Part shown: positions 29,995 to 50,146 of the stretch, one piece after another
Layout of the letters: each line of letters begins with the position of its first letter
How positions within the stretch are numbered: position 1 is the first letter of the stretch
IMG/VR virus record: IMGVR_UViG_3300036770_008729
Location: 1 to 64,000 of that record
DNA length: 64,000 bases
Direction: 5' to 3' (one strand)
The notes under the pieces: generated by a model
Database searches by the model: none
The model's input: the letters and a program-made list of their open reading frames with translations, nothing else
What the model was told of the DNA's origin: nothing
Made by a program: the position numbers and the translations under genes

Positions 29995-30009
29995 AAATCA
30001 TTAGTCTAA

Positions 30010-30097: not shown

Positions 30098-30799
30098 ATG
30101 ATACATATACTATGGTGCACTTTAAGACCTGCACAATTCAAATCATCACATACGGAATGGTTGAAAAGAGCTGATAATCCTGAAAATATACAAACTTATG
30201 TTGCTGTAAACTGGCATCAACATGCAAATGAACTCAGAGATTATTTGAAAAATAATTTTATGATAACTTTAGATACTAATAAAATTGGTGTTTGTTATCC
30301 ATCATATCAGTTATCTTCAAATCTTGGTGTAAAAATGGGTAAATGTGAAGATTCTGATATTGTAGTTTTTGCGTCTGATGATTTTATGGCTCCTCAAAGT
30401 TGGGACACATACCTCATAAACAAATTCAATGGTAAAGAAGATTGTGGACTTATGGTTAGAGATGGTTATCAAAAACCAGACTCTTCTAATATGTTACATC
30501 CGGCTATCACAATTCCAATTATGACTTATGGTTGTTTGAAAAAGTTAAACATGACAATTTATCATCCAGCTTATAATCATATGTTTTCAGATTGTGAATT
30601 GTATAATAATCTAAAAGATTTGAATTTACTATATGATGATAGGCTCAACGATGAGACTACATTTGAACATCTTCATTATGCTGCTGGTAAAAGAAAGGCT
30701 GACCAGGCAGACCAAGCTTATAATGCTAAATGGAAAGATGATGAAGCAACTTGGAATAAAAGAAAGATTCTCACTGTTGAGGAAAGAATAAAAATCTAA
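30098..30799 (+). CDS. GT-A fold (GT2-like) glycosyltransferase
   Basis: IVVFASDDF (DxD-like), HPAYNHMFSDCEL, FEHLHY. Confidence 0.7.
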   Translation: MIHILWCTLRPAQFKSSHTEWLKRADNPENIQTYVAVNWHQHANELRDYLKNNFMITLDTNKIGVCYPSYQLSSNLGVKMGKCEDSDIVVFASDDFMAPQSWDTYLINKFNGKEDCGLMVRDGYQKPDSSNMLHPAITIPIMTYGCLKKLNMTIYHPAYNHMFSDCELYNNLKDLNLLYDDRLNDETTFEHLHYAAGKRKADQADQAYNAKWKDDEATWNKRKILTVEERIKI

Positions 30800-30804
30800 A
30801 ATAA

Positions 30805-31518
30805 ATGTGTATTATAACAACTATAAATCCTTATGGTAATTTTGATGCTCAAAAGGAAGCAATTTCATCTTGGACTTCTAAGTTCCCTGTTTATTCTGTG
30901 AATACTAAGTTAGAAATTGAGATTGCTAAGCCTCTTTATCCAGATGTAAAATTTATAGAAACTGATAATACTTTTCAGTATAATAAAAAGACACTTATAA
31001 AGCTTTCCGCAATTTTGCAATCTGCAAAACAAATAGATTCTAATTTTATTGCTATTATAAATTCCGATATAATATTAAGTGATAAAATCAAAGATATTTT
31101 TATCAATAAATATTTAAATGATGGTATTATAATTGGTACTAGATGGGAGTTAGATGAAAGTAAATCAGAAATATATCCATTCAAATCAGGATATGATATA
31201 TTTATTTTTTCAAAGAAGTATATAGATCTTTTTAATAATATAAAGTATGTTATAGGCTTACCTTGGTGGGACTTTTATATTCCACTTATTGCGATAAAAT
31301 CTGGACTGAATGTTTATCATATTAAAAATAAAGTAATTTTTCACAGAACTCACACTACCAATTATGATGATGAAGTTTGGATTAAGTTTGGTGAATTTCT
31401 ATATCAAGATATTATGGTATCTCTTATGAAAAATAATATGAATATAGGATTGTTAGATTTTTGTAGAGGTACTAAGTCATTTATTGAAAAAAAACAAATT
31501 GATATTAAATTAAAATGA
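30805..31518 (+). CDS. Putative GT-A glycosyltransferase
   Basis: IAIINSDII, GYDIFIF, IGLPWWD; cluster context. Confidence 0.55.
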   Translation: MCIITTINPYGNFDAQKEAISSWTSKFPVYSVNTKLEIEIAKPLYPDVKFIETDNTFQYNKKTLIKLSAILQSAKQIDSNFIAIINSDIILSDKIKDIFINKYLNDGIIIGTRWELDESKSEIYPFKSGYDIFIFSKKYIDLFNNIKYVIGLPWWDFYIPLIAIKSGLNVYHIKNKVIFHRTHTTNYDDEVWIKFGEFLYQDIMVSLMKNNMNIGLLDFCRGTKSFIEKKQIDIKLK

Positions 31519-32342
31519 AAAATAAAATTAAAATAGATTTCTCAGATTTTTGGGGTGGATTTGATAAGACAAATAACTATTTTTATAATTTATTAAAAGA
31601 CGAATTTGATGTGGAGATTTCTAATAACCCTGATTATCTTATCTTTTCGGTTTTTGGCAATAATCATCAAAGATATAGTTGTAAAAAGATTTTTTATACA
31701 GGTGAAAATGTTGCACCACCACTTGGATATTGCCAATGGTCTTTTTCTTTTGACTGCTTAGATGATTCAAGAAATTATAGATTACCTCACTATTTATTAT
31801 ATGATGGTTACTATGAATTAGCTAGACCTAAAATTATTGATGAAAGTATGGCTATTAGAAAGTTTTGTAATTTTGTAGCATCAAATGGTAATTGTAAAGA
31901 AAGAAATGATTTTGTTACTAAATTATCTAAATATAAAAAGGTAGATTCTGGTGGTAGATGGATGAATAATATTGGATATGTTGTTTCTGATAAAAGAAAG
32001 TTTCAATCAGAATATAAATTCTCAATTGCTTTTGAGAATGATGCTTATAGACCTGGATATGAATGGTATATAACTGAAAAGATAATGGATCCAATGACGG
32101 TAAATTCTATACCTATCTATAAAGGTGGTAGTAAAATTGACAAAGATTTTAATACTAATTCATTTATAAATTGTCATAATTTTTCAAGTGCTGAGGAAGT
32201 TATTGACCGTATTATTGAGTTAGATAAAGATGATAATAAATATTTATCTATGTTAAACCAACATTGGTTTAATGACTATAATATTCCTGATAATAACAAA
32301 TTAGAAAATATAAAATCTTTTTTGTATAAAATTTTTAATTAA
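31515..32342 (+). CDS. GT10 (alpha-1,3-fucosyltransferase-like) glycosyltransferase
   Basis: KIFYTGEN, FCNFVASN, VDSGG, YKFSIAFEN....YITEKI.D......IPIY.G. Confidence 0.88.
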   Translation: MKNKIKIDFSDFWGGFDKTNNYFYNLLKDEFDVEISNNPDYLIFSVFGNNHQRYSCKKIFYTGENVAPPLGYCQWSFSFDCLDDSRNYRLPHYLLYDGYYELARPKIIDESMAIRKFCNFVASNGNCKERNDFVTKLSKYKKVDSGGRWMNNIGYVVSDKRKFQSEYKFSIAFENDAYRPGYEWYITEKIMDPMTVNSIPIYKGGSKIDKDFNTNSFINCHNFSSAEEVIDRIIELDKDDNKYLSMLNQHWFNDYNIPDNNKLENIKSFLYKIFN

Positions 32343-32347
32343 AACTA

Positions 32348-33007
32348 ATGGAAATCTTTCACCGATTTATACAAATTATCGAGTCAGTCGATAAACCTGT
32401 TATATTTGAATTTGGTACTTGTGATGGTCAACATACTAATGTAATGTGTAGTATTCTTAAACAATTAAGAAAAAACTTCACTTATCATGCCTTTGAAGCT
32501 GATTATAGAATTATACCGTCATTTAATCGAGTCAATAATAATCATCTCAATGAGATTAAACTTGTTCATGGTGCAATAGGTAATAATGACGGAACTGTTA
32601 AAATTCATTTATCTGGAGGTGAAGAAAAAAGAGAAGGCCACTTCAAACAATCTTTTTACGGTTCATCTTCTATAAGAAAGCCTAAGAAGACATTAGAGTA
32701 TTGGCCAGACATGACTTTTGAAGAGTCTGAGGTAACTTGTTATAAATTTGATACTTACTTCAATGATAACAAAATTAAGACTATAGATTTTATATGGGCT
32801 GATATTCAGGGTGCCGAAGGAGACTTAATTGATGGTGGTCAATTAGCATTGGCTAACACAAGATATCTTTATACTGAGTACTCTAATGATGAGTTATATG
32901 AGGGAGAAATTGGATTGAAAGAAATACTTGACAGACTTCCTGGTCAATGGTCGGTTGTAGAAGATTATGGTTCTGATGTTCTATTAAAAAATGAATCTTT
33001 TAAATAA
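32348..33007 (+). CDS. FkbM family methyltransferase
   Basis: IFEFGTCDG, AFEAD, GSSSI, IDFIWADIQGAE, YLYTEY. Confidence 0.85.
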   Translation: MEIFHRFIQIIESVDKPVIFEFGTCDGQHTNVMCSILKQLRKNFTYHAFEADYRIIPSFNRVNNNHLNEIKLVHGAIGNNDGTVKIHLSGGEEKREGHFKQSFYGSSSIRKPKKTLEYWPDMTFEESEVTCYKFDTYFNDNKIKTIDFIWADIQGAEGDLIDGGQLALANTRYLYTEYSNDELYEGEIGLKEILDRLPGQWSVVEDYGSDVLLKNESFK

Positions 33008-33648
33008 TGAAACTTTATACAATTTATTCGCCTTCTCATAAAACTTTATATGAGAATCATTTTCTAAAGAGTTTACCAAATGAATTTGAATTAAAGTCAC
33101 TTGAAATAGAACAGGAATGTCCTACTGGTGAATTCTATAAAGAGGGTTGGTCTAAAACTTGTTATAGAAAAGTAGAATACTTTGAACAAGCTTGTATAGA
33201 ATCTCAAGGTGAAATCTTTGTTTTTTCTGATGTTGATATACAATTCTTCGATAACATAAAGGATGTATTAATTGAAGAACTTGGAGATGCAGATATTGCT
33301 TGTCAGAATGATACGGGTCATTACTATTGTTCTGGTTTTTTTATTTGTCGAGCAAATGAAAGAACTTTGAATATGTTTAGACAGATGAAAATTAATTATC
33401 ATCTTGAAGACCAGACAACGTTAAATAAACATATTCATATGGTTAATTCAAAGTTTTTATCAAATAAATTTTTTACTATTGGTCATTTATTGCATAGAGC
33501 TTGGAAAGGAGAATATTTTCAAATTAATTATCCGATTTTAGTTCATCATGCTAATTGGGTAGAGGGAATTGATAATAAAATAAAATTATTAGAAATAGTT
33601 AGAAAAAAAATAGAAATTAATGAATACCTATCAAATCTACCTAAATGA
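33007..33648 (+). CDS. Nucleotide-diphospho-sugar transferase (GT77-like)
   Basis: FVFSDVDIQFF, CSGFF, DQTTLN, HHANW..G...KI. Confidence 0.75.
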   Translation: MKLYTIYSPSHKTLYENHFLKSLPNEFELKSLEIEQECPTGEFYKEGWSKTCYRKVEYFEQACIESQGEIFVFSDVDIQFFDNIKDVLIEELGDADIACQNDTGHYYCSGFFICRANERTLNMFRQMKINYHLEDQTTLNKHIHMVNSKFLSNKFFTIGHLLHRAWKGEYFQINYPILVHHANWVEGIDNKIKLLEIVRKKIEINEYLSNLPK

Positions 33649-34483
33649 AAAATTTTCACAGTTTAGACCAAGTCCTAAATATCCTACTTATCCTCCATAT
33701 CACGAAGGTTTTTATTTAGAAGATTATTTCTTTGATTGGTTTACAAAAAATAATATTGAAACAGAAAGATATTTGATTCCTGTTTTTTGGACAACTTGTT
33801 ATGTTGATAATTGTTTTAGTGGATTACAAGAAGTGATTAATACATTGGATCCTAATCTTAAATACTTTACCGTAGCTCAGCATGATGATGCTATCAGAGA
33901 AAAATTACCACCAGATACAATTTGTTTTAATGCGGGTGGAAATGGTGGTGGTATTCCTATACCACTTGTTTGTTCTCCTATAAAAGATGAAGTAAAACCT
34001 AAATTGAATAAAGATATATTTTGCTCTTTTGTTGGATCAGTAACTCATCCTATAAGAAACCTAATGTATAGTAGCTTACATAAAAATTCAAAGTATATAA
34101 TATATGGTAAGCAATGGACATCATCTGTTTCTGATAGTGACTTTAATAACTTTATTACATTAACATCTAGAAGTGTATTTTCTCTTTGTCCAAGAGGATA
34201 TGGTAGAAGTTCATTTAGGCTTTATGAAGTTATGCAATTAGGATCAATACCAGTTTTCATTTATGATTATAAATGGTGTCCATTTGAAGATGAAATAGAC
34301 TGGAATGAGTTTTGTGTTTTGATTGATTCAAATAACATTCAAAATATTGATAATATTCTATCTAGTTATAGTGCTGATAAAATAAAACAAATGCAAGATA
34401 ATTTGTATAATTATTGGAGTCAGAACTTCACTATGCGGTCAATATGTGAAAAAATAATTAAAAAAATATTAAAAATATATTAA
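33620..34483 (+). CDS. Exostosin-like (GT47) glycosyltransferase
   Basis: CSFVGS, SVFSLCPRGYGRSSFRLYEVMQLGSIPVFI. Confidence 0.85.
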   Translation: MNTYQIYLNEKFSQFRPSPKYPTYPPYHEGFYLEDYFFDWFTKNNIETERYLIPVFWTTCYVDNCFSGLQEVINTLDPNLKYFTVAQHDDAIREKLPPDTICFNAGGNGGGIPIPLVCSPIKDEVKPKLNKDIFCSFVGSVTHPIRNLMYSSLHKNSKYIIYGKQWTSSVSDSDFNNFITLTSRSVFSLCPRGYGRSSFRLYEVMQLGSIPVFIYDYKWCPFEDEIDWNEFCVLIDSNNIQNIDNILSSYSADKIKQMQDNLYNYWSQNFTMRSICEKIIKKILKIY

Positions 34484-34489
34484 AAATTA

Positions 34490-35200
34490 ATGAACAAATT
34501 ATTCAGTGAAATAGAAATAACAGAGATTTATAAAAATTATGTTTATAAAGATGATAGTTATTATAAAAAATTTGAAAGTTTACCATTTGAACTTAATAAT
34601 AAAAATTGGAAATGGGAAGGTAAAGACTTTCCCAGAATATGGTGTGTATTAGATTTTCAAGAATGGATGCATAAGCATAATTTAAAACATTTTAATAAAG
34701 TTTTATCAAATCAACCAGCATCATATCTATCAACTAATTTATCTGATCCTGAACTCGAGTATATAACGTGGAATACAATAGATTTTATTCCATATAGTAA
34801 TGGAAATAATGATTTTCATACACTTGACTTAGTTGAAAAAAATTATGATTTTATAATTTTTAATCAAACACTTGAGCATCTTTATAATCCTTTTCTTTCC
34901 GTTGAAAGAATATATAATCATCTTAAACCTGGTGGATTTTTATTTACTAGCGTTCCAACTATTAATATACCACATATGACACCATTTCATTTCAATGGAT
35001 TGACTCCTATGGGTTTATGTATGCTAATGAAGTCGGTGGGTTTTGAAATTGTTGAGTTGGGATTTTGGGGAAATGTTGATTATATTAAATATATTTTTGA
35101 AACTGGAAATTGGCCAGATTATAGAGATTTAATGAGAGATAATATTATAACAAATGAAAGAGATAAAAATGCTCAGTGTTGGATATTAGTAAAAAAATAA
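34490..35200 (+). CDS. Class I SAM-dependent methyltransferase-like protein
   Basis: YDFIIFNQTLEHLYNP....ERIYNHLKPGGFLF..VP. Confidence 0.75.
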   Translation: MNKLFSEIEITEIYKNYVYKDDSYYKKFESLPFELNNKNWKWEGKDFPRIWCVLDFQEWMHKHNLKHFNKVLSNQPASYLSTNLSDPELEYITWNTIDFIPYSNGNNDFHTLDLVEKNYDFIIFNQTLEHLYNPFLSVERIYNHLKPGGFLFTSVPTINIPHMTPFHFNGLTPMGLCMLMKSVGFEIVELGFWGNVDYIKYIFETGNWPDYRDLMRDNIITNERDKNAQCWILVKK

Positions 35201-35206
35201 CAGATT

Positions 35207-35962
35207 ATGAAAAAGTATTTAATGGTTATTGCTAAATATAAAGATTGGAGGCAAGATTTTTTTGAAACTCACATGTCACCTAGAAATAAAGAATATTGTG
35301 AATTGCATAATTTTGAATATATTGAAATTACAGGTGATTTAGAATTATTTAGAGGAAATCCAACTTGGTGGAAATTCACAATTGTTAGAGATATGATAAA
35401 CTCTGGTAAATTAAAAGATGGTGATATTATAACACATTTAGATGCTGATATGGCTATCTATGATTTGTCAATAGATTACTCAACTAAAAAGTCATTTTCA
35501 TACTCTATAGATTCGGGTAATACTCATTGTATGGGAAGCTATAGTATTAAAATCAATGATTGGTCAAAAAAAATGATAGATTTAATTTTGGATGAAGAAA
35601 GATTTCAAATTTTCAAAAATAAAAGATCTATACATCCTGTTGTTGGTAATTGGTGTTTTTGGGATTGGTTTAGAGAACAAGCTTCTTGGTATTCTTTAGC
35701 TGGAATTAAAAATCATTCTTGGGAACCATTTTTTAATTTACCAAATTTTGGATGGAATTCTGATGTAGATGAATATACAGTCTATAGTATTGAAGAGTTG
35801 AATGAACATGTTGAGGTATTACCAACTAGTTGGAATGTAACTGAAATGGAAGGAGAATCCTCTTGTCAATATCTAATTAATAAAGTTGATAAACAAGATG
35901 TTTTTATTAGGCACTTTGCTGGTGGACAACCTTGGAGAAAAGAATGGTTTGAAAAAAAATAA
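35207..35962 (+). CDS. GT34 (GMA12/MNN10-like) glycosyltransferase
   Basis: YC..H.FEY, WWKF, HLDADM, REQAS, HFAG. Confidence 0.7.
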   Translation: MKKYLMVIAKYKDWRQDFFETHMSPRNKEYCELHNFEYIEITGDLELFRGNPTWWKFTIVRDMINSGKLKDGDIITHLDADMAIYDLSIDYSTKKSFSYSIDSGNTHCMGSYSIKINDWSKKMIDLILDEERFQIFKNKRSIHPVVGNWCFWDWFREQASWYSLAGIKNHSWEPFFNLPNFGWNSDVDEYTVYSIEELNEHVEVLPTSWNVTEMEGESSCQYLINKVDKQDVFIRHFAGGQPWRKEWFEKK

Positions 35963-35972
35963 TTTAGAAAAA

Positions 35973-36590
35973 ATGAAAAAAGTATTTATAGATGGAGGTA
36001 CAAATCTTTGTCAAGGTTTAAGTCAAATAATGAAAATTCACAATATGGATGAAAGTTGGATAATATATTCATTTGAAGTTAATCCGAATACATTTAATTC
36101 TATAGATAAATCAAAATTTTCCAATGTCACTTTCATAAACAAAGGATTGTGGTCAGAAAATTGTATTAAGTTATTAACAACTGAAATTGTTCCTGGTAGA
36201 CTTGATGGTATACATAGTGAATTTTTGATTGATAAAGATATGAGTGATAAGCCTGTTGGTGGAGCTTCCAATGTAATTGGTGATGAATGGATAAAACCTA
36301 TGTTTGTTCCTGATGAATATATTAATACCTCATCCAATGAGGTTGAGTGTATTGATTTTTCAGAATTCATAAAAAATAATTTTGACAAATCTGACCATAT
36401 AGTTCTCAAATTGGATGTTGAGGGTGCGGAATATCCTATCTTAAAAAAAATGATTCAGGATGGAACTATTGATTACATAAATGAGATGTATGTAGAATGG
36501 CATCAACGATTACTTAAAGTAGATCACAATGAATCAGAACTTAGAAAAAATATTGAGAGTAGAAATATAAAAATTAATGATTGGAATTAA
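35973..36590 (+). CDS. FkbM family methyltransferase
   Basis: MKKVFIDGGTNLCQG, SFEVNP, IVLKLDVEGAEY, MYVEWH; track start 35886 overlaps the upstream gene. Confidence 0.82.
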   Translation: MKKVFIDGGTNLCQGLSQIMKIHNMDESWIIYSFEVNPNTFNSIDKSKFSNVTFINKGLWSENCIKLLTTEIVPGRLDGIHSEFLIDKDMSDKPVGGASNVIGDEWIKPMFVPDEYINTSSNEVECIDFSEFIKNNFDKSDHIVLKLDVEGAEYPILKKMIQDGTIDYINEMYVEWHQRLLKVDHNESELRKNIESRNIKINDWN

Positions 36591-36605
36591 AAATAATAAA
36601 TAAGT

Positions 36606-37295
36606 ATGTTAAATATTAAAGATGTTTATATAATACACTATACAAAATTAGAAAATAGAAGAAATAAAATTTTTGAACAGTTTGATAATATAACTCAAAA
36701 TTTAAATTTTATAAATGATTTTGACCAAGAAGAACTAAGTCAGGATATTATAAATGACTTTTATTACCCTTCAGATGAAGAGTGGGATAAAAAAGTAACC
36801 CCATTGTGGAATCGTAATTTACACAGACCAAGAATTTTAAATATAGCAGAAATTTCTTGTACTATAAAGCATATAATTGCTATTGAAGAAGTTGCAAAAA
36901 AAGGAGATGCCTTAATAATCGAAGATGATTTAATCATAAAAGATAATTTTGTTCATGAATTTAATAATGTAATTGAAAACCTACCAAATGATTGGGATGT
37001 CATAATGATTGGTAAGGGATGTAATATGACTGCCAAAAATATAATACCCGGAAAGACACTTTATAAACAGAGTCATCCAGCAACAAGATGTTTGGATTCT
37101 TATTTATTAAGTCAAAATGCAGCAATTAAAATTTCAAAAACAATAAAGCCTTTCCAATTAGTTTCTGATTGGGAATTGGCCTATCATCTTTATTTACATG
37201 ATTTAAATGTATATTGGCTCGAACCATCTCCTTGTTTCCAAGGTTCTGAAAAGGGAATTTATAAATCCACTTTAGATTTTGGAAATAATAGATAA
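36606..37295 (+). CDS. GT25 family glycosyltransferase
   Basis: YIIHY..L..RR, EISC..KH, LIIEDD, LP.DWD. Confidence 0.8.
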   Translation: MLNIKDVYIIHYTKLENRRNKIFEQFDNITQNLNFINDFDQEELSQDIINDFYYPSDEEWDKKVTPLWNRNLHRPRILNIAEISCTIKHIIAIEEVAKKGDALIIEDDLIIKDNFVHEFNNVIENLPNDWDVIMIGKGCNMTAKNIIPGKTLYKQSHPATRCLDSYLLSQNAAIKISKTIKPFQLVSDWELAYHLYLHDLNVYWLEPSPCFQGSEKGIYKSTLDFGNNR

Positions 37296-37309
37296 AAAAA
37301 ATAATACTT

Positions 37310-40307: not shown

Positions 40308-40327
40308 AAAAAAATAAAAATAAAAAT

Positions 40328-41916: not shown

Positions 41917-41926
41917 TATAATTAAA

Positions 41927-42421: not shown

Positions 42422-42427
42422 TTAAAT

Positions 42428-43162
42428 ATGAAAATATACTGTTTTGATTTAGATGAAACACTTTGTCGTAATTCTGAAAAAGATTACGCAAAATCAACTC
42501 CTATAACCGAGATGATTGAGAAGGTTAATTACTTATATGACCAAGGTAATACAATAAAGATATTTACAGCTAGAGGAATGGGTAAATTCTCAGGTGATGT
42601 TGGTAAAGTTAATGATGCTTATTATGAACTAACTAAAAGTCAGTTAGAAAATTGGGGTGTTAAATATCACGAACTACATTTAGGAAAACAATCATTTGAT
42701 TATTTCATTGATGATAAAAATCTAACAATTGAACAATTCAAATCATTAGTTAAACCTAAAGTTGGATTTATTGCTGGTGCTTTTGATGTAATACACCCAG
42801 GCTATATTGAAATGTTTCAGTTTATGAGAAAAAAATGTGACTATCTTATTGTTGGTTTACATAAAGATCCATCATTAGAAAGAGATACTAAATTAAAACC
42901 TGTTTTAACTACAGATGAGAGAAAAGAAATACTTTTATCTTTAAAATATATTGATGAGGTTATAGAGTATCAAACAGAATTAGAACTATTAGAAATATTA
43001 AAAAATGATAGAATTGATATTAGATTTTTAGGAGATGACTATATAGATAAACACTATACAGGTAAAGGTCTTCCAATTGAAATTAAGTTTATAGATAGAA
43101 GTCATGGTTGGTCAACTACTAAATATAAAATGGTTATAAGAGATAGTTTATTTAAAAAATAA
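42428..43162 (+). CDS. Fusion of HAD phosphatase and cytidylyltransferase-superfamily nucleotidyltransferase
   Basis: N-half FDLDETL...FTARG...DYFIDDK; C-half GAFDVIHPGY (HxGH variant), LIVGL, ERKEIL, GDDY, RSHGWSTT. Confidence 0.82.
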   Translation: MKIYCFDLDETLCRNSEKDYAKSTPITEMIEKVNYLYDQGNTIKIFTARGMGKFSGDVGKVNDAYYELTKSQLENWGVKYHELHLGKQSFDYFIDDKNLTIEQFKSLVKPKVGFIAGAFDVIHPGYIEMFQFMRKKCDYLIVGLHKDPSLERDTKLKPVLTTDERKEILLSLKYIDEVIEYQTELELLEILKNDRIDIRFLGDDYIDKHYTGKGLPIEIKFIDRSHGWSTTKYKMVIRDSLFKK

Positions 43163-43173
43163 ATTAATAATAA

Positions 43174-44076
43174 ATGATTAGAGCAATAGTAACCGGTGGT
43201 TGTGGATTTATAGGGAGTCATATAGTTGATAGATTAATAGAATTGAATTGTCAAGTTTTAGTAATAGATGATTTATCTGCTTCAGAAAATGAAAAGTTTT
43301 ATTTTAATGAAAAGGCTTTTTATCATAAGTTAGATATTTCTAATAAGAGTGACATAGAGCCAATTTTTAATAACGCTGATTATGTATTTCATTTAGCGGC
43401 TGAATCGAGAATTCAACCAGCTATTCAAAATCCAAATAGGGCATATAATGTAAATGTACTTGGAACTCTCAATATTTTAGAACTATCTAAAAAATATAAA
43501 ATAAAAAGAGTGATGTATTCATCTACATCGTCTGTCTATGGATTAACTAAAAATTTACCAACAAACGAACTTGAAACAATAGATTGCTTGAATCCTTATG
43601 CACATTCTAAGTTTTTAGGTGAAGAACTATTTAGACAGTACTATAAAATTTATAGATTGGATAGTGTAATCTTTAGATATTTCAATGTTTTCGGTGAAAG
43701 GTCACCTGTGAAAGGTCAGTATGCTCCTGTTGTTGGTATATTTCTTAATCAACATTTTCAGAATAAACAACTCACAATAATAAGCACTGGTCAAAGAAAA
43801 AGAGATTTTATACATGTTAGTGATATAGTTGATGCTAATATTAATGCCATGTTAATTACAGATAATTTAAAATCAACAACAATAAATATAGGTAGTGGTC
43901 AGAACATAAGTATAAAAGAAATTGCTGATATAATTTCTGAAAATCAAATTCATTTAGAAGATAGACCCGGTGAGGCGGACAATACACTCGCGGATATATC
44001 CGAAGCCGAAGGTATTCTTAATTTTAAACCTAAAACCAATGTTAGAGATTGGATAAAAAAACAAATTAGTCAATGA
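43174..44076 (+). CDS. NAD-dependent epimerase/dehydratase (extended SDR)
   Basis: VTGGCGFIGSH, FHLAA, YAHSK (YxxxK), RYFNVFG, RDFIHV.D. Confidence 0.92.
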   Translation: MIRAIVTGGCGFIGSHIVDRLIELNCQVLVIDDLSASENEKFYFNEKAFYHKLDISNKSDIEPIFNNADYVFHLAAESRIQPAIQNPNRAYNVNVLGTLNILELSKKYKIKRVMYSSTSSVYGLTKNLPTNELETIDCLNPYAHSKFLGEELFRQYYKIYRLDSVIFRYFNVFGERSPVKGQYAPVVGIFLNQHFQNKQLTIISTGQRKRDFIHVSDIVDANINAMLITDNLKSTTINIGSGQNISIKEIADIISENQIHLEDRPGEADNTLADISEAEGILNFKPKTNVRDWIKKQISQ

Positions 44077-45203
44077 AAATTGCTTTAGTAACTGGTTCTG
44101 CTGGTCTGATAGGATCTCAGGCTTGTGATTTTTTTCATAAAAAAGGATACAAAGTCATAGGAATTGATAATGATATGAGAGCTTATTTCTTTGGAAAGTC
44201 ATCATCTACAATTCATTCGTCAGAATCTTTGAAATCAAAATTGAACAATTATAAACACTATAATTTAGACATCAGGAACTTTACAGATTTAGAAAAATTA
44301 TTTTCCGATTATTCTTCGGATATAGATATAGTGATACATACTGCTGCTCAACCCTCTCATGATTGGGCTGCTAAAGAACCATTAACCGACTTTAGCATTA
44401 ATGCCGTAGGTACTATGAATTTACTTGAATTGACAAGATTATATTGTCCAAAAGCTACTTTTATTTTTACTTCAACCAATAAGGTATATGGTGATAGACC
44501 TAATTTTGATTACTATTTTAAAAATGGTTTTGATGTTCCAGAAAATAGAAAAGACACTCCAATTATAATAGAATACGAAAATAGATTTGAAGGATTACAT
44601 AGAGAAACTGGTGAATTAACTTCGATATCTGAGAATATGTCTATTGATAATACCAAACATTCGGTTTTTGGAGCCTCTAAAGTCGCTGCTGATATTATGT
44701 GTCAAGAATATGGTAAGTATTTTGGCATAAATGTTGGTATTTTTAGAGGTGGTTGCCTAACCGGACCAAATCATGCTGGTGCTGAGTTACATGGATTTCT
44801 TTCTTATTTAGTCAAGTGTGTTGTTAATGATAAACCTTATAAAATCTTTGGTTACAAAGGAAAACAAGTTAGAGATAATATTCACTCTTGTGACTTAGTT
44901 AATATGTTTTGGCATTTTCATAAAAATCCAAAACCTGGTGAAGTTTACAATGCTGGTGGTGGAAGAGAAAATTCAATTTCAATTTTAGAGGCAATCAACA
45001 CTATAAATAGAATATCTGGAACAGATTGGAAAAATTACACATTATGTGATGAAAACAGAATTGGTGACCACATTTGGTATATTTCAGATTTAACAAAATT
45101 TAAATCTCACTATCCAAATTGGAAAATAGAAATTAGTCTTGAAGACACTATAAAACAAATTATAGATTTTGAATTATGTTTGAAACAAAAAAAGGTTATT
45201 TAG
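44073..45203 (+). CDS. NAD-dependent epimerase, CDP-paratose 2-epimerase-like
   Basis: TGSAGLIG, HTAAQPSHD, STNKVYGD, FGASK, RGGCLTGP, GKQVRDNIH, R.GDHIWYISD. Confidence 0.85.
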   Translation: MKIALVTGSAGLIGSQACDFFHKKGYKVIGIDNDMRAYFFGKSSSTIHSSESLKSKLNNYKHYNLDIRNFTDLEKLFSDYSSDIDIVIHTAAQPSHDWAAKEPLTDFSINAVGTMNLLELTRLYCPKATFIFTSTNKVYGDRPNFDYYFKNGFDVPENRKDTPIIIEYENRFEGLHRETGELTSISENMSIDNTKHSVFGASKVAADIMCQEYGKYFGINVGIFRGGCLTGPNHAGAELHGFLSYLVKCVVNDKPYKIFGYKGKQVRDNIHSCDLVNMFWHFHKNPKPGEVYNAGGGRENSISILEAINTINRISGTDWKNYTLCDENRIGDHIWYISDLTKFKSHYPNWKIEISLEDTIKQIIDFELCLKQKKVI

Positions 45204-45213
45204 TATAAGAAAT

Positions 45214-45978
45214 ATGAACTTTGCACTTTGTTACCGGGGAATCTCTTTCAGAGATAATTATAGAAATGAATCACACTTGAGTCCTTATAAAATAGATTTT
45301 GATTCAGTTAGTCATTTTCATTATGAAAATGTTATCAAACCTCTGAGAGAAAGAGGAGATGTGGTGGATATATTTTTCAATACTTATGACTCGATTAAAT
45401 TACAAGATTACAAAAATCAATTTCAACCTGTAGATGTTTTAGTGAAGGATTTCAACGCAGGTATTGTAAAGTATAACTTTAACCATGTTTGTGAGTTGAT
45501 AATTTCAACTCTTCAACAAGTTAAGGATTATGAGAATAGAACAGGAAAAGTTTATGATTATATTATATTGAATCGATTTGATATAGTAATCTTTTCGGAT
45601 TTTACAAAATGTTTTATTATTGAAGACGGAGTTTCAGTTCCGACAATCAATGATGATTGTTTTATTGTCTATCATAAGAGTATTTTAGAAAAAGCGATCT
45701 GGATTTATAAAACTTATCAAAATCAGTTGATAACTCATCACATGGTTTTCAAATTTATTGAACACGGTATAAAATATCATTCTATGTTTCCAAACAAACC
45801 AGGAGATGAAGTTGGATTTAATGGCCCGTTCTGGAGATTAGAAAGAGTTATGTTTAACCCAGATGGTCATAATGTTAAAGAATATAACTTTTACGATGTC
45901 TTTAATAAAAATTCGAAGTGGTTCGGTTTCAAATATGAACCAAATAAAGAATTTTTTGATTGTAAAAAATTAATTTAA
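45214..45978 (+). CDS. Hypothetical glycan-cluster protein (possible glycosyltransferase)
   Basis: ALCYRG, YDYIILNRFDI; cluster context. Confidence 0.55.
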   Translation: MNFALCYRGISFRDNYRNESHLSPYKIDFDSVSHFHYENVIKPLRERGDVVDIFFNTYDSIKLQDYKNQFQPVDVLVKDFNAGIVKYNFNHVCELIISTLQQVKDYENRTGKVYDYIILNRFDIVIFSDFTKCFIIEDGVSVPTINDDCFIVYHKSILEKAIWIYKTYQNQLITHHMVFKFIEHGIKYHSMFPNKPGDEVGFNGPFWRLERVMFNPDGHNVKEYNFYDVFNKNSKWFGFKYEPNKEFFDCKKLI

Positions 45979-45982
45979 TTAT

Positions 45983-46339
45983 ATGAATATCAGACCTAAA
46001 ACAATATTTATTGACATAGATGGTACATTAATTTCACATTCTGGTTCATTAATTGGTCAAATGAAAAAACCTGAGCTTTTACCCGGTACTTTAGAAAAAT
46101 TATTGGAATGGGATAGAAATGGATACAATATAATTTTGACAACCGGTAGAAGAGAAAGTATGAGAAAAAAAACAAAAAAACAGTTAAGTAAATTGGGTAT
46201 TTTCTATGATAAATTAATAATGGGTATTGGTGGTGGAACTCGAATAATAATTAATGATAGAAAGCCAAACAGTACGGATGATACCTGTTTTGCTATAAAT
46301 ATTGATAGAAATCAAGGCATAGAAAATATAGAAATTTAA
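45983..46339 (+). CDS. Small HAD-superfamily hydrolase
   Basis: IFIDIDGTL, LTTGR, IIINDRKP. Confidence 0.8.
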   Translation: MNIRPKTIFIDIDGTLISHSGSLIGQMKKPELLPGTLEKLLEWDRNGYNIILTTGRRESMRKKTKKQLSKLGIFYDKLIMGIGGGTRIIINDRKPNSTDDTCFAINIDRNQGIENIEI

Positions 46340-46340
46340 T

Positions 46341-46694
46341 ATGGAAAATAAAATCACAAAAATAGAAAAACCTTGGGGTTGGGAAAAATGGATAGAAGTG
46401 AATGAACACTATGTAGTGAAGGAACTTTTTATGAAAAGTGGCAATTGTTGTAGTCTTCAGTATCATGAAAAAAAACACGAAACATTTTATGTTGTAAGTG
46501 GAAGAATGAAGTTTTATGTTGGGGAAAAAATAGAAAATTTAAATGAGTTCATTTTAGAACCTGGTCAAAATTATGTCATTAAACCATTTATAATCCATAG
46601 AATGGAGGCGGTAGATGATTGTATTTATATTGAATGTTCAACAAATTTTCTTGATGATGTTATAAGATTAGAAGATAAATATGGTAGAAAATAA
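46341..46694 (+). CDS. Cupin-domain protein (type II mannose-6-phosphate isomerase-like)
   Basis: KPWGWE, SLQYHEKKHET, HRMEA, EC(S)T..LDDVIRLEDKYGR. Confidence 0.82.
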   Translation: MENKITKIEKPWGWEKWIEVNEHYVVKELFMKSGNCCSLQYHEKKHETFYVVSGRMKFYVGEKIENLNEFILEPGQNYVIKPFIIHRMEAVDDCIYIECSTNFLDDVIRLEDKYGRK

Positions 46695-48240
46695 CTATAA
46701 AGTAATAATTACAACTAGTGGTATAGGTAGTCGATTAGGAGAACTTACAAATTATACTAATAAAAGTCTAATTAGAATAGGTAAAAAACCTGCTATTTCT
46801 TATATAGTTGAAAATTATTCAAATGAAATTGAAATTGTAGTTACACTTGGATATTTTGGAAGTCATGTGAAGCAGTTTCTAACTATGACTTATCCTGAAA
46901 AAAAATTCACTTTCGTTGAAATAGATAAATATTCTGGTGAGGGTTCTAGTCTTGCTTACTCTTTGTTACAAACAAAAGAAATTGTTCAATGTCCTTTTAT
47001 ATTTCACGCTTCCGATACTTTAGTATTTGAAAAAATAAACAAACCAAATATGAATTGGTTGGGTTTTACTTATAAAGAGGATTCATCTCAATATAGAACT
47101 TTAGAGTTAAATAGCAATTTGAAAATTTATGATAAGGGAGATTTAAACTCTAATGCAATTTATATAGGTCTTGCTGGTATAAATGATTATGAATTATTCT
47201 GGTCTTATTTAGAAGAAGAATATAATAAAAATCCATCAGATGCCAGTTTAAGTGACTGTCATTCTATTTCAAAAATGATTGATAATAGTTGGAAAACATT
47301 TGAATTTAAAACTTGGCAAGATATTGGTAATGTTACTTCCTTAAAAAATGCTAGAAAACATATACAGGATAAATTTGAGATTTTAGATAAAAACGATGAA
47401 TCAATATTTTTATTTGATGATTTTGTAATAAAATTCTTTCACGATAATAATACTTGTATCAATAGAGCTAAAAGAGGATATAAATTATCTGGACTTGTTC
47501 CTAAAATTTTAGACAGTAGTGATAATTTTTACAAGTATGAATACTGCAAAGGAGACTTATTTTCCTCAGTAGTAAATGAGAGTAACTTTGAAGAATTCTT
47601 AGATTGGTCTATTACTAATCTTTGGAAAGAAAAAAATTATTCGGAAAAATTCAAAGATAGTTGTTATGAATTTTATTTTGATAAAACTGTAAAAAGAATA
47701 AGTAAATTTCTTAAAGATAATAATCTCAAAGATGAAGAAACTATGATAAATGGTATCTTGATTCCTCCGGTTTTTGAAATGATTGAAAAAATAAATAAGT
47801 CAGATATCTGCAATTCTATACCTTATCAATTTCATGGCGATTATATACTTGATAATATCATTAAAACTACAAATGGATTCAAACTGATTGACTGGAGACA
47901 AGATTTTGGAGGGGATTTAGATAACGGAGACATCTATTATGATTTAGCAAAATTAAATCATAATTTATTGTTCAATCATGAAATAGTTAACAATGGTCAT
48001 TTCTATGTAAAAAAAAATGAAAAAGAAGTTATTTGTGATATTTTAAGAAGTGACAATTTAACAAATTGTCGAGAAATACTACATAATTTTATAAATAAAA
48101 ATAATTTTGACTTAACAAAAGTTAAAATACTAACTTCGTTGATTTGGCTCAATATGTCACCTTTACATGATACAAAAATTGGAAACTTTTTATTTTATTT
48201 TGGTAAATTAAATTTATATAAAATTATTCATAAAATATGA
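46681..48240 (+). CDS. Fusion of sugar-phosphate nucleotidyltransferase and APH/choline-kinase-like domain
   Basis: ITTSGIGSRLG..T...NKSL, WQDIG; C-terminal FHGDYILDNI...IDWRQDF...GDIYYDLAKL. Confidence 0.78.
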   Translation: MVENNYKVIITTSGIGSRLGELTNYTNKSLIRIGKKPAISYIVENYSNEIEIVVTLGYFGSHVKQFLTMTYPEKKFTFVEIDKYSGEGSSLAYSLLQTKEIVQCPFIFHASDTLVFEKINKPNMNWLGFTYKEDSSQYRTLELNSNLKIYDKGDLNSNAIYIGLAGINDYELFWSYLEEEYNKNPSDASLSDCHSISKMIDNSWKTFEFKTWQDIGNVTSLKNARKHIQDKFEILDKNDESIFLFDDFVIKFFHDNNTCINRAKRGYKLSGLVPKILDSSDNFYKYEYCKGDLFSSVVNESNFEEFLDWSITNLWKEKNYSEKFKDSCYEFYFDKTVKRISKFLKDNNLKDEETMINGILIPPVFEMIEKINKSDICNSIPYQFHGDYILDNIIKTTNGFKLIDWRQDFGGDLDNGDIYYDLAKLNHNLLFNHEIVNNGHFYVKKNEKEVICDILRSDNLTNCREILHNFINKNNFDLTKVKILTSLIWLNMSPLHDTKIGNFLFYFGKLNLYKIIHKI

Positions 48241-49238
48241 AAGATATAAAATTTTATATAGGTCCAATGAGTAAAAACATTGTTGATTCGGTTATTGAAT
48301 ATTCAATAAACAATAATATCAATATTGGACTTATACCGTCTAGAAGACAGATTGATAAAAATGGTGGATATGTAAATAATTGGACGACTAAAGAATTCTC
48401 CTTTTATGTCAAAAATAAATCAAAAAATATTCTACTGGTAAGAGACCATTGTGGACCAAATCAAGGACAAATTGAAGATGATGGAGTTGATTCATTTATC
48501 GAAGATTGTTCATACTTTGATGTTATACATATTGATGTTTGGAAAAAATATCCAACCTATGAAGAAGGTTTATCGAAAACAATAGATTTTATAAATCTTG
48601 GTTATAAATTAAATTCAAATTTATACTATGAAATTGGAACAGAAGAGGCTATACGAAAGTTTGAGTCTTTTGAACTTGATAACCTTGTAAGTGATCTTAA
48701 TAAAAATCTATCAAATGAGTTATTTTCTCGAATAAAATTTTTAGTTATTCAATCAGGAACAGCTCTTAAAGAAAATACCAACATCGGTATATATGACAAA
48801 GAAAGACTAACCAAAATGCTAAAAATTTGCAAAAAGTATAATCTTATTTCAAAAGAGCATAACGGTGACTATATATCTAATGATATATTAAAAGAGAAAT
48901 TCATTTTAGGTTTAAATTCAATAAACATAGCACCTGAGTTTGGTCAAATTGAAACCAATGTTTTACTCGAGGAAATCAATTCACTTAATAGAAACGATTT
49001 ATTAGATGATTTTTTTCAAATATGTCTTAAATCTAATAAATGGAAAAAATGGGTATCAAATGATTTCGATCCTTTAAACAATAAATTGGAACTTATAAAT
49101 ATTTGTGGACATTATGTTTTTTCATCTGAGGAGTTTTTGATTATCAAACATCAACTTTCAAAAGACATTGATGATAAAATAAAAATTTCTATAAAACGAA
49201 GAATTGAAGAATTACAATTTTATACGTCAAAAAAATAA
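48237..49238 (+). CDS. GatZ/KbaZ-like (tagatose-phosphate aldolase/epimerase family) TIM-barrel protein
   Basis: GPMSKN, RDHCGP, IHID, YEIGTEE, KEHNGDY, NIAPEFG. Confidence 0.65.
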   Translation: MKDIKFYIGPMSKNIVDSVIEYSINNNINIGLIPSRRQIDKNGGYVNNWTTKEFSFYVKNKSKNILLVRDHCGPNQGQIEDDGVDSFIEDCSYFDVIHIDVWKKYPTYEEGLSKTIDFINLGYKLNSNLYYEIGTEEAIRKFESFELDNLVSDLNKNLSNELFSRIKFLVIQSGTALKENTNIGIYDKERLTKMLKICKKYNLISKEHNGDYISNDILKEKFILGLNSINIAPEFGQIETNVLLEEINSLNRNDLLDDFFQICLKSNKWKKWVSNDFDPLNNKLELINICGHYVFSSEEFLIIKHQLSKDIDDKIKISIKRRIEELQFYTSKK

Positions 49239-49246
49239 ATTTAATA

Positions 49247-50146
49247 ATGAAAAATAATATAACTTTTTTCGGAGCAAGTATAACTCAACAAGGTGGTGGA
49301 TATGTCCATCATTTTTCAAATTTAAATCCACAATTCAAAATTAGTGTTTTTGGTTATGGATCAATGCATCTAAAAGATGCTGGTGTTTGTCATATTGACA
49401 CTGTTTTGACATCTGATCCAGAATGGTGTTTTATAGATTGGTTCAGTACTGCTTATGTTGATGAGGCCAAAGATGATTTTGATGGAATTACACTTTATAT
49501 AGATACCATACTTCATAAATTCTATTCACGTGGTATCAAACTTGTTTTTCTTACACTACCAGAAACAGTAAGAGATAAAACATTAATACATCAACGGTTA
49601 AATTATTATCTAGAATCAAAGGGGGTTCCAACAATTGATATATCTAAATCTTTTGAGTCAAACATAAATCAGATATTAAGAGATGGAATACACTCAACTC
49701 CTTATGGTTCTGAGCAATATGCTAAATTAATTTCTGATAAATTCTTTAACGAAATATACAACAAGCATGAGATTCCATCTGAATTTCCGAGTGTTACAAA
49801 ATATTGTGATATTAAGAGTACTCAATTAAATGTAATTGTAAATAAAAACATTACGTTTACTGGTAAGGGAGAAGTGATAGGAATTTCACAAATGTTAGGG
49901 CCATACACTGGACTTTTAAAGATTAATAATCAATTAGTTAATAATTGGGACAGATGGTGTTATTTCGAAAGAGAAATGGTAAATCTTAAATTTGAAATAG
50001 ATGGTGTAACAACCATAGAGATTTTACAAGATCCGGTAGATACTTCAAGTTGTGAATATAGTTGTAATTGGAATGTTCCAAAATTGTTAAAACTTAAGAC
50101 TTTATACTATACTGGTAATATTGAAAATATCAATTTTGATAGGTAA
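49247..50146 (+). CDS. SGNH hydrolase-like protein
   Basis: FFGASIT, DGIHST..G. Confidence 0.65.
   Translation: MKNNITFFGASITQQGGGYVHHFSNLNPQFKISVFGYGSMHLKDAGVCHIDTVLTSDPEWCFIDWFSTAYVDEAKDDFDGITLYIDTILHKFYSRGIKLVFLTLPETVRDKTLIHQRLNYYLESKGVPTIDISKSFESNINQILRDGIHSTPYGSEQYAKLISDKFFNEIYNKHEIPSEFPSVTKYCDIKSTQLNVIVNKNITFTGKGEVIGISQMLGPYTGLLKINNQLVNNWDRWCYFEREMVNLKFEIDGVTTIEILQDPVDTSSCEYSCNWNVPKLLKLKTLYYTGNIENINFDR

Follow-up and report, generated by a model that had tools for sequence, protein, structure and literature searches.

A hypervariable glycan-gene cassette at a fixed genomic slot in huge Bacteroidota phages

Virion O-glycosylation has been described for mycobacteriophages (Freeman et al., 2023, Cell Host Microbe; cited in PMC12619734), in which phage-encoded soluble glycosyltransferases act in the cytoplasm, with no export machinery, to glycosylate virion proteins. 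These phages reportedly carry only a few glycosyltransferase genes, located beside structural genes, and no sugar-nucleotide pathway. Larger autonomous clusters occur in giant viruses, including the clade-specific clusters of Megavirinae (PMC10117803) and the chlorovirus enzymes (PMC9614988), where the virus encodes sugar-nucleotide pathways, soluble glycosyltransferases and methyltransferases, the gene content differs between clades, and the glycans coat fibrils or capsids. GT47-like, GT77-like and FkbM-type enzymes, as well as multidomain glycosyltransferases, also occur in these eukaryotic viruses of another realm. In Bacteroidota, loci for general protein O-glycosylation are chromosomal; the 27-kb cluster of Tannerella forsythia comprises sugar pathway genes, five glycosyltransferases and three methyltransferases and varies between conserved ends. 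Each of the described loci includes a wzx flippase, and they work through a lipid carrier and the periplasm (PMC6120980). Bacterial O-antigen and capsule serotype loci likewise hold hypervariable cassettes between conserved flanking genes, with gene-by-gene turnover and their own sugar-nucleotide genes. The seroconverting phage modules (gtrABC, oac) also alter glycans but consist of one to three genes that include membrane proteins (the GtrA flippase and GtrC).

Here, we examined a 64,000-nucleotide window, the first 64 kb of the 281,114-bp IMG/VR virus record IMGVR_UViG_3300036770_008729, in which a 20-kb island of 26 genes encodes soluble proteins for the synthesis and decoration of a complex glycan. 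In contrast to the mycobacteriophage genes, the island includes donor synthesis, is far from the structural genes and is hypervariable between relatives, although virion glycosylation is in this case only inferred. Unlike the giant virus clusters, it sits at one conserved slot, varies even between near-identical strains and belongs to a virus with a bacterial host. It is similar in size and composition to the chromosomal O-glycosylation loci and shares conserved ends and the host phylum with them, but no flippase was found in the phage islands, and hydrophobic segments are nearly absent from their products (see below). In comparison with serotype loci, the islands lack a recognizable initiating transferase, flippase, polymerase or chain-length regulator, and no membrane-spanning protein was found that could serve as a transporter.

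Gene content of the island

An earlier note, made from the sequence alone, had described about 24 co-directional genes at positions 30098–50146, including about nine glycosyltransferases, five methyltransferases (three FkbM-type, one broken), two SGNH proteins and nucleotide-sugar enzymes, without recognizable export genes. This observation is confirmed. The interval is filled by 26 ORFs on the plus strand, which encode 9–10 glycosyltransferases, five methyltransferases, two SGNH-like proteins and, at 40963–48240, about ten nucleotide-sugar enzymes. Assignments were made by Pfam and NCBIfam profile searches, PDB sequence matches, AF2 models searched with Foldseek, and language-model neighbors, and the GT10, Nucleotid_trans, GT47, GT25 and GT1-group/GT4 matches are above Pfam's cut-offs. 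Labels such as L015, L018, L030, L101 and P0287 denote sequences used in our comparisons, and X4–X6 are runs from other studies. The features are as follows.

27826–29994 (+): ClpB/ClpA-like AAA+ ATPase (Pfam AAA_2, AAA_lid_9 and ClpB_D2-small), 64–95% identical in relatives; conserved left anchor of the slot, not part of the glycan pathway.
30015–30048 (+): terminator-like hairpin with a T-run between the ClpB-like gene and the island, followed by a GTATATA element 34 nt before the ATG at 30098.
30098–30799 (+): conserved GT-A glycosyltransferase without a Pfam match, the most widely shared island gene; predicted fold (pLDDT 88) matching TarS, TarP and SpsA at probability 1.0; 581 homologues, the best 120 at 79–86% identity; invariant S93-D94-D95-F96; present at 50% identity or more in 10 of 25 relatives.
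30805–31518 (+): protein of predicted GT-A/nucleotidyltransferase fold, family unknown; no Pfam, NCBIfam or PDB sequence match; a weaker model (pLDDT 74) that matches WrtF, SpsA, TarS and KdsB; exactly absent in a strain in run X6.
31515–32342 (+): GT10 fucosyltransferase-like protein (FucT_N + GT10), the second recurrent core gene, 73–79% identical in 9 relatives.
32348–33007 (+): FkbM-type methyltransferase (Methyltransf_21, 59 bits).
33007–33648 (+): Nucleotid_trans (GT77-like) glycosyltransferase, N-terminal half of a protein that is fused in relatives; aligns to residues 1–209 of the 489-aa fused protein of L030; a 498-aa fusion stands in the P0287 contig.
33620–34483 (+): GT47 exostosin-like glycosyltransferase, C-terminal half of the same fusion, in another frame with its own ATG; the junction lies at an A8 run.
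34490–35200 (+): class I SAM methyltransferase, a single-gene indel in natural populations; contigs of runs X4 and X5 skip 34469–35205 with 1 nt between the two sides.
35207–35962 (+): tentative GT34-like glycosyltransferase; no Pfam match, with the assignment resting only on language-model neighbors that carry PF05637.
35886–36590 (+): FkbM-type methyltransferase; the likely true start is the internal ATG (MKKVFIDGG).
36606–37295 (+): GT25 glycosyltransferase.
37310–38209 (+): second GT10 fucosyltransferase-like protein, also with FucT_N.
38199–38819 (+): SGNH/GDSL-like hydrolase or acyl-handling enzyme (weak; match below Pfam's cut-off), with an N-terminal GDS block and no signal peptide.
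38800–39858 (+): GT-B glycosyltransferase (GT1 group, GT4-type).
39855–40307 (+): truncated (broken) FkbM paralogue of 35886; below the cut-off of NCBIfam fkbM_fam; alignment shows loss of the D-V-E-G-A-E block and the C-terminus; a 40-nt repeat links the two genes.
40328–40966 (+): class I SAM methyltransferase.
40963–41916 (+): GHMP kinase of the heptose-7-phosphate kinase (HddA/WcbL) type; best PDB matches 4n3o (4e-20), 4usm and 3k85; NCBIfam HddA below its cut-off; more than 1300 homologues, named hddA by JGI.
41891–42421 (+): SIS-domain isomerase, GmhA-like (below the equivalog cut-off).
42428–43162 (+): HAD phosphatase fused to a cytidylyltransferase-like nucleotidyltransferase (RfaE domain II/TagD-like); the kinase-SIS-CTP_transf trio recurs in the same order in two other phage contigs.
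43174–44076 (+): GalE/WbgU-like nucleotide-sugar 4-epimerase (SDR).
44073–45203 (+): CDP-tyvelose 2-epimerase-like SDR (PDB 1orr, 2e-33), the only island gene shared with LR745206.1; 72% identical to L015 and 75% to L018.
45214–45978 (+): unknown, DUF7796/WavE-like by features, possibly a glycosyltransferase.
45983–46339 (+): small HAD phosphatase.
46341–46694 (+): cupin (mannose-6-phosphate isomerase C-terminal type), a candidate sugar epimerase or isomerase.
46681–48240 (+): 519-aa protein with an N-terminal sugar-phosphate nucleotidyltransferase domain; a 593-aa counterpart lies beside the heptose trio in L101.
48237–49238 (+): unknown, with a faint GatZ/KbaZ-like match.
49247–50146 (+): tentative SGNH/GDSL-like protein, by language-model neighbors only; no signal peptide.
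50148–50747 (−): conserved 199-aa gene, 69–83% identical in relatives; right anchor of the slot.

The kinase/isomerase/nucleotidyltransferase trio is reminiscent of the GDP-D-glycero-alpha-D-manno-heptose pathway and its derivatives in capsules (Campylobacter, Burkholderia WcbL), which likewise involves a GmhA-like isomerase, an HddA/WcbL-like GHMP kinase, HAD phosphatases and a nucleotidyltransferase, and the SDR and cupin enzymes could modify the heptose. However, all matches are distant and fall below NCBIfam's equivalog cut-offs, and the nucleotidyltransferase next to the kinase is of the cytidylyl/adenylyltransferase type, fused to a HAD domain, rather than HddC-type. The trio recurs in another phage lineage, about 10 kb from a prohead protease gene.

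A conserved slot with variable content

Both flanks of the island are syntenic with LR745206.1 and LR756502.1, Mahaphage-clade genomes of 634 and 642 kb, sizes that Al-Shayeb et al. describe as complete and circular (PMC7162821). The earlier note had named host-derived contamination as a possible flaw, and the IMG/VR label "provirus" for this record, together with an island G+C content (26–29%) slightly below the 30% of the record, could be taken to favor bacterial DNA joined to a phage contig. This reading is refuted by the synteny; in addition, the same slot holds glycan genes in more than 20 independent contigs, and the island is recovered in several independent samples.

Comparison with relatives shows what could not be seen from the single sequence, namely that the island is one allele of a hypervariable cassette in a fixed slot between the ClpB-like gene and the 199-aa gene, in a clade of huge Bacteroidota phages related to these Mahaphage genomes. 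The slot is empty (333 bp) in some relatives and spans 5.6–23.8 kb in others; many relatives were sampled only over its first 10 kb. Other alleles are also glycan clusters but carry different genes, including GT31, GT6, GT2, GT11, PseB-like, deacetylase, formyltransferase and C-methyltransferase genes. The 253 ORFs from 24 islands fall into 164 clusters at 45% identity, and the most common Pfam families among 150 representatives are sugar SDRs, GT2, FkbM, GT47, DegT and GT11. Of the 26 genes in the window, 18 have no homologue at 50% identity or more in the sampled islands. Near-identical strains from other studies differ by single-gene indels, lacking exactly one gene.

Soluble proteins and the possible acceptors

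No protein of this island contains a hydrophobic 19-residue segment or a signal peptide, and only 4 of 253 island ORFs elsewhere have even one hydrophobic segment. Neither a Wzx nor a phosphoglycosyltransferase of either class was detected in the 281-kb record, and no flippase or initiating transferase was found in 25 related islands or in five related genomes of 385–642 kb; a search for Wzy_C, restricted to the 281-kb record, gave no credible match. For ABC transporters, the evidence is limited to the absence of membrane segments, which argues against an ABC permease in the island. The lack of recognized export genes in the earlier note holds and extends to these islands and genomes.

Three phage proteins have signal peptides, SprB/PKD repeats and type IX secretion C-terminal domains, and the host is therefore Bacteroidota. 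The emphasis of the earlier note on eukaryotes and giant viruses, as the best-known sources of GT47, GT34 and GT77, is only partly apt: several of the enzymes sit in virus-dominated protein clusters (the nearest clusters of 35207, 45214 and 49247 are 81–100% viral), but glycan loci with a similar composition of glycosyltransferases, methyltransferases and sugar pathways are described in the host phylum (PMC6120980, PMC8698959). The 30098 family comprises 587 clusters at 50% identity, including multidomain proteins, one of which is fused to GT8 and sits in a phage-like contig. A scan of 185,579 species genomes, albeit with only two peptide patterns, found no relative of 30098.

These data suggest a model in which the cassette is a self-contained, entirely soluble pathway. 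The kinase/isomerase/phosphatase-nucleotidyltransferase module would make an activated heptose-type sugar, epimerases and further nucleotidyltransferases would supply other donors, and the nine or ten glycosyltransferases would assemble a hetero-oligosaccharide, which probably contains fucose or a similar 6-deoxy sugar and would be decorated by the methyltransferases and SGNH enzymes. In this view, the conserved GT-A protein at 30098 and the GT10 enzyme at 31515 form the recurrent base of the pathway, and the rest is swapped gene by gene. Because no membrane step was found to be encoded, we infer that the chain is built directly on soluble phage proteins in the cytoplasm, candidates being virion fibers or decoration proteins rich in Ser/Thr, which would result in strain-specific sugar coats on particles, as in mycobacteriophages and giant viruses. 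The gene content, the slot, its variability and the absence of export genes are established by the analysis, and we are highly confident of them, whereas the sugar identities, the role of 30098 and the acceptor are inferences, such that our confidence in the model as a whole is only moderate.

The interpretation offered in the earlier note, either cytoplasmic glycosylation of virion proteins or remodeling of host surface glycans, is partly supported, as both remain the leading explanations and the sequence does not discriminate between them. The acceptors it proposed, at 1–3905, are plausible candidates and comprise a collagen-like (GTS/GSN/GSS)n fiber and a tail-spike-like protein with 28% Ser/Thr. 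However, no acceptor was identified, collagen-like repeats are missing from LR745206.1, which still has an island, and the island is not next to structural genes, its neighbors being ClpB-like, MgtC, CYTH, FMN-reductase and SSB genes.

Alternatively, the soluble enzymes could work at the inner face of the membrane on undecaprenyl-linked intermediates of the host, such as the Bacteroidota general O-glycan core, LPS or capsule, with the host's own initiating transferase, flippase and transferase or ligase exporting the altered glycan. This would change the surface of the infected cell and the glycans on secreted proteins, including the type IX secretion cargo of the phage, possibly for superinfection exclusion or altered adhesion. 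We consider this main rival possible but less likely. In bacteria, GT10, GT11, GT6 and GT25 enzymes normally act on lipid-linked glycans, and these and the heptose families act in LPS, capsule and O-glycan synthesis. The variable O-glycosylation loci of the host phylum look much like this island and include, at one end, a conserved GT2-type fucosyltransferase of about 30 kDa with a DXD motif (PMC8698959), which resembles the conserved 27-kDa GT-A protein at 30098. Type IX secretion cargo is itself reported to be glycosylated (PMC11969387, PMC11611037), and the three secreted surface proteins show that the phage does act on the cell surface. Arguing against this alternative are the absence of flippase and initiating transferase genes noted above, the lack of a signal peptide in the SGNH proteins, the virus-dominated clusters and the failure to find 30098 relatives in the species genomes scanned with two peptide patterns only; moreover, highly diverse glycans would all have to pass one host flippase and transferase.

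Two further possibilities are less probable. DNA hypermodification, in which sugars on modified bases would block restriction, has a precedent in phage glycosyltransferases that build glycans on DNA (Pyle, 2024, cited in PMC12619734), but is very unlikely here, as the 281-kb record has no thymidylate-synthase-like hydroxymethylase, the slot can be empty in relatives, and ten glycosyltransferases, five methyltransferases and a heptose pathway far exceed any known DNA glycan. Another soluble product, such as a free oligosaccharide, a glycolipid or a glycosylated small molecule, or a sink that diverts host sugar precursors, would be compatible with the solubility of the enzymes and the lack of an identified acceptor but is also unlikely, given that no polyketide, lipid or aglycone synthesis genes are present in the island and that strong gene-by-gene diversification is typical of exposed surface glycans.

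Gene content of the island and the predicted sugar module

The region 30098-50146 is filled by 26 ORFs, all on the + strand and separated by gaps of at most about 20 nt. Assignments rest on Pfam matches above the family cut-offs unless another line of evidence is named:

30098 (+): first gene of the island, without a Pfam family; predicted GT-A glycosyltransferase fold
30805 (+): weaker structural model of the same general fold
31515 and 37310 (+): two GT10 enzymes with the FucT_N domain
32348 and 35886 (+): FkbM-type methyltransferases
33007 (+): Nucleotid_trans (GT77-like) enzyme
33620 (+): GT47 exostosin-like enzyme
34490 and 40328 (+): class I methyltransferases
35207 (+): GT34-like by language-model neighbors only
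36606 (+): GT25 enzyme
38800 (+): GT-B enzyme of the GT4 type
39855 (+): truncated FkbM paralogue of 35886, by alignment
40963 to 48240 (+): block of sugar-nucleotide enzymes
45214 (+): DUF7796/WavE-like by language-model neighbors only
49247 (+): SGNH-like by language-model neighbors only

The inventory of glycosyltransferases, methyltransferases and nucleotide-sugar enzymes drawn up in an earlier note from the sequence alone is therefore right in all essentials. The GT10, GT25 and GT47 domains all score above the Pfam gathering thresholds. The GT34 assignment proposed in that note did not receive such support, as 35207 has no Pfam hit at E 0.01 or better and only its language-model neighbors carry PF05637. 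The 39855 ORF has lost the D-V-E-G-A-E block and everything after it. In relatives, the GT77-like and GT47 domains (33007-34483) form one 489-498-aa protein, but here they are encoded by two overlapping ORFs in different frames; the junction lies at an A8 run and the second ORF has its own ATG, which could reflect gene fission or a slippage-prone site. Two further GT2-domain genes lie outside the island, at positions 177359-177643 and 234754-235032 of the full virus record (G000).

The protein encoded by 30098 has a mass of 27 kDa and contains an invariant S-D-D-F block. Its predicted structure (pLDDT 88) matches the GT-A enzymes TarS, TarP and SpsA, and that of 30805 (pLDDT 74) shows the same general fold. 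Searches of the unknown ORFs 30805, 35207, 45214 and 49247 against the sequences of PDB chains gave nothing usable, and neither did a profile of the 30098 family. A scan of 185,579 species genomes, which used only two peptide patterns, found no relative of the 30098 family.

The kinase at 40963 matches heptose-7-phosphate kinases best among solved structures (4n3o at 4e-20; WcbL). It is followed by a GmhA-like SIS isomerase (41891) and by a HAD phosphatase fused to a cytidylyl/adenylyltransferase-like domain (42428), and the same three genes stand in the same order in two other phage contigs. The kinase family has more than 1300 members at 58-94% identity, which JGI names hddA. Downstream lie a GalE/WbgU-like 4-epimerase, a CDP-tyvelose-2-epimerase-like enzyme, a second HAD protein (45983), a cupin, and a 519-aa nucleotidyltransferase (46681). 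Candidates are present for all four activities of a nucleotide-activated heptose pathway (isomerase, heptose-7-phosphate kinase, phosphatase and nucleotidyltransferase), although all NCBIfam scores are far below the equivalog cut-offs. An activated heptose is our best reading of the module and is not a demonstrated product. A smaller heptose-type glycan module is found in a different huge-phage lineage, in a 308-kb ENA contig (L101), where it comprises an epimerase, a C-methyltransferase, the kinase trio, a GT2_5-like gene and a 593-aa nucleotidyltransferase. Its neighbors include a sigma-70-like gene, DHFR and an S77 prohead protease, the last about 10 kb away.

Phage origin, host and flanking genes

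The island lies in the first 64 kb of a 281,114-bp IMG/VR virus record with 30% G+C. An alternative genetic code is not needed, as translation table 11 gives 94% coding. Genes on both sides of the cluster are syntenic with LR745206.1 (634,780 bp) and LR756502.1 (642,428 bp): on the left, 21534-29994, including a ClpB-like ATPase at 84% identity, and on the right, 50148-59487, including a gp32-type SSB. Complete, circular Mahaphage-clade genomes of 634, 636 and 642 kb with predicted Bacteroidetes hosts have been reported (Al-Shayeb et al., PMC7162821), and the two syntenic records agree in size with two of these. Searches of the record for the Pfam hallmarks Terminase_6N and Gp23 found nothing; the Gp23 control gave no signal anywhere, rendering that result uninformative, and phage identity rests instead on PHROG hits and synteny. 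The record is rated 94% complete and labeled 'provirus', yet syntenic relatives are 385-642 kb and a 141-kb relative is rated 20% complete. As the record starts inside a gene, it is probably a fragment.

Three large Ser/Thr-rich proteins (28% Ser/Thr) independently point to the same host phylum:

7250-14227 (+): phage-encoded protein with signal peptide, SprB/PKD repeats and type IX secretion C-terminal domain
66270-70769 of the record (-): a second such protein
117360-120977 of the record (+): a third such protein

Two of the secretion domains are Por_Secre_tail and one is CHU_C. The type IX secretion system is limited to Bacteroidota (PMC11611037), and the phage appears to send adhesin-like proteins to the host surface. 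Host contamination, which would have refuted the earlier note, is excluded by the synteny on both sides. The O-glycosylation sequon D-(S/T)-(A/I/L/V/M/T) is not enriched in the 2325-aa secreted protein, in which about 7 occurrences were counted by eye against about 8 expected from composition.

The left flank, 23484-29994, is a run of host-like auxiliary genes that is conserved in relatives:

23484: P-loop kinase
25248: FMN reductase-like gene
26431: MgtC, encoding a 5-helix protein
26895: CYTH domain gene
27826: ClpB-like ATPase

The 26431 protein was considered as a GtrA-type flippase, but it is MgtC. Two tRNA-Met (CAT) genes lie at 4401-4473 and 26173-26247. Elsewhere in the record, a PrkA/YeaG-type serine kinase (88500-90422, corresponding to 6500-8422 of the locus L004) is 86% identical to those of the 634- and 642-kb phages and is also found in Ralstonia phage RsoM2USA and in Thermus phages.

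Sigma-70-type promoter matches are not enriched (145 found against 154 expected). An ATATATA motif, however, lies 20-40 nt upstream of many start codons throughout the record (for example, in 3906-3971, 7135-7249 and 29995-30097). AATATATA occurs in 60 of 179 upstream regions against 3.4 expected, and it is probably a phage promoter element. The island has GTATATA 34 nt before its first ATG, although the motif does not date the expression of the island.

A variable cassette in a fixed slot

The main new finding is that the island is a swappable cassette in a fixed slot. Between the ClpB-like gene and a conserved 199-aa gene (50148-50747), relatives hold very different amounts of DNA.

Length of the slot between the ClpB-like gene and the conserved 199-aa gene
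333 bp (empty): three contigs (L036-L038)
5.6, 6.6, 7.9, 8.4 and 8.9 kb: five IMG/VR contigs
about 12.4 kb: the P0287 contig
15.6 kb: LR745206.1
20.1 kb: the island studied here
23.8 kb: LR756502.1

The records of relatives with an empty slot are only 8-20% complete, and their emptiness therefore refers to the slot alone. The LR745206.1 allele is again a glycan cluster, but one with GT31, GT6, GT2, GT11, a PseB-like dehydratase, a deacetylase, a formyltransferase and a sugar C-methyltransferase; it shares only the 2-epimerase-like gene with the island studied here. Across 24 relatives, 253 island ORFs fall into 164 clusters at 45% identity. The commonest Pfam families among 150 representatives are sugar SDRs, GT2, FkbM, class I methyltransferases, GT47, DegT aminotransferases, C-methyltransferases, GT11 and GT31. 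Only 30098 (10 of 25 relatives, about 80-85% identity) and the GT10 gene 31515 (9 of 25) recur often, and 18 of the 26 genes have no homologue at 50% identity or more in the sampled islands, a count limited by the fact that many loci cover only the first 10 kb of the slot.

Turnover is also visible within populations, as exact single-gene presence/absence variants occur in near-identical strains from other studies. Contigs from two unrelated freshwater studies (runs X4 and X5) match the island at about 98-99% but lack exactly the methyltransferase gene 34469-35205, and another run (X6) lacks 30766-31514.

The island thus has one feature of Wzx/Wzy- or ABC-dependent O-antigen and capsule loci, namely glycosyltransferases with dedicated sugar-nucleotide genes in a variable cassette between conserved flanks. 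A 0-24-kb cassette at a fixed slot, diversifying gene by gene across freshwater and groundwater samples, would show that huge phages undergo serotype-like diversification of a glycan. This points to strong selection on a surface that is recognized by something, be it hosts, competing phages, grazers or particles. The system also offers a defined comparative setting, with the same flanks and different cassettes, for linking glycan genes to structures, a large pool of soluble glycosyltransferases, methyltransferases and rare-sugar pathways, many without a Pfam family, and a direct test of whether phages of Bacteroidota hijack the general O-glycosylation route of the phylum.

Absence of membrane steps and the inferred acceptor

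None of the 26 proteins has a hydrophobic 19-residue segment or a signal peptide, and only 4 of 253 ORFs in the islands of relatives have even one such segment, with none being polytopic. Wzx (PF01943) and both classes of initiating phosphoglycosyltransferase (PF02397, WbaP/Bac_transf type, and PF00953, WecA/MraY type) are absent from the 281-kb record and from five related genomes of 385-642 kb. Wzy_C, searched in the 281-kb record only, gives a single 16-bit sub-threshold hit at its far end. With respect to transporters, the conclusion rests on the lack of membrane segments rather than on searches for ABC families. The cassette works like a serotype locus but fails the defining tests for O-antigen, capsule and O-glycosylation loci, because it has no initiating, flipping or polymerizing genes. 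It likewise lacks the small GtrA-type flippase and membrane-bound GtrC of gtrABC seroconversion modules.

The enzymes are enough to make donors and to assemble and decorate an oligosaccharide of roughly ten residues in the cytoplasm. We favor, with moderate confidence, soluble phage proteins as the acceptors, for several reasons. The system is self-contained in every allele. Several of its enzymes belong to virus-dominated families: the 30098 family includes multidomain proteins in phage-like contigs, and the nearest protein clusters of 35207, 45214 and 49247 are mostly viral. A related heptose module lies near the prohead protease gene in L101, and precedents exist in mycobacteriophages and giant viruses. 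Candidate acceptors are the following:

1-768 (-): collagen-like (GTS/GSN/GSS)n fiber gene, cut by the start of the record
786-3905: 1039-aa tail-spike-like protein, 28% Ser/Thr

The related contigs G005 and G006 also begin inside collagen-repeat genes, so these repeats probably break assemblies; relatives have collagen-repeat ORFs of up to 3057 aa. Neither collagen repeats (4 of 5 relatives) nor type IX secretion domains (4 of 5) track the island. In contrast to glycosylation systems of the mycobacteriophage type, the island is not next to structural genes. Its neighbors are ClpB-like, MgtC, CYTH, SSB and similar genes, and the nearest fiber-like genes lie 26 kb upstream.

Alternatively, the enzymes could extend host lipid-linked glycans that the host then exports, which we regard as the main rival, though a more tentative one. 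The variable O-glycosylation loci of Bacteroidota have the same make-up and a conserved small GT2-type fucosyltransferase (GtfE/BF4306 family) at one end (PMC6120980, PMC8698959). The 30098 protein is a GT-A enzyme standing first in the island, but this observation involves no direct alignment with BF4306, Tanf_01305 or Phep_4048, and the PDB profile search found nothing. The phage also plainly invests in the cell surface through its secreted adhesin-like proteins. Against this reading, the loci described in PMC6120980 each carry a wzx at one end, whereas the phage islands never do. The interpretation in the earlier note, which proposed either cytoplasmic glycosylation of virion proteins or remodeling of host surface glycans, is partly supported. 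Glycosylation of phage DNA is unlikely, given that the enzyme set is far too elaborate and that the record has no thymidylate-synthase-like hydroxymethylase (PF00303), the only base-modifying route searched. The gene content, the slot, its variability and the absence of the export genes searched for follow directly from the sequences, whereas the sugar identities, the role of 30098, the acceptor and the glycosylation of virions are inferred.

A bolder reading, which is possible but which we hold only tentatively, is that huge phages of Bacteroidota wear self-made, strain-specific sugar coats. In this view, a single genomic slot would work like a bacterial serotype locus and exchange glycan genes between phages, from no genes at all to 24 kb, such that particles of otherwise similar phages would differ in surface glycans. 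The coat would be built entirely in the cytoplasm on phage proteins, starting from the 30098 family as a virus-specific GT-A enzyme family.

Glycosylation encoded by a phage itself is established only for small gene sets in mycobacteriophages, and the huge-phage papers that we searched mention glycosyltransferases only generically and in passing. Large autonomous glycan machineries are otherwise known from giant viruses of eukaryotes. The cassette described here resembles the giant-virus glycosylation clusters in logic, but it is in a phage, and it is much larger and more variable than the mycobacteriophage system.
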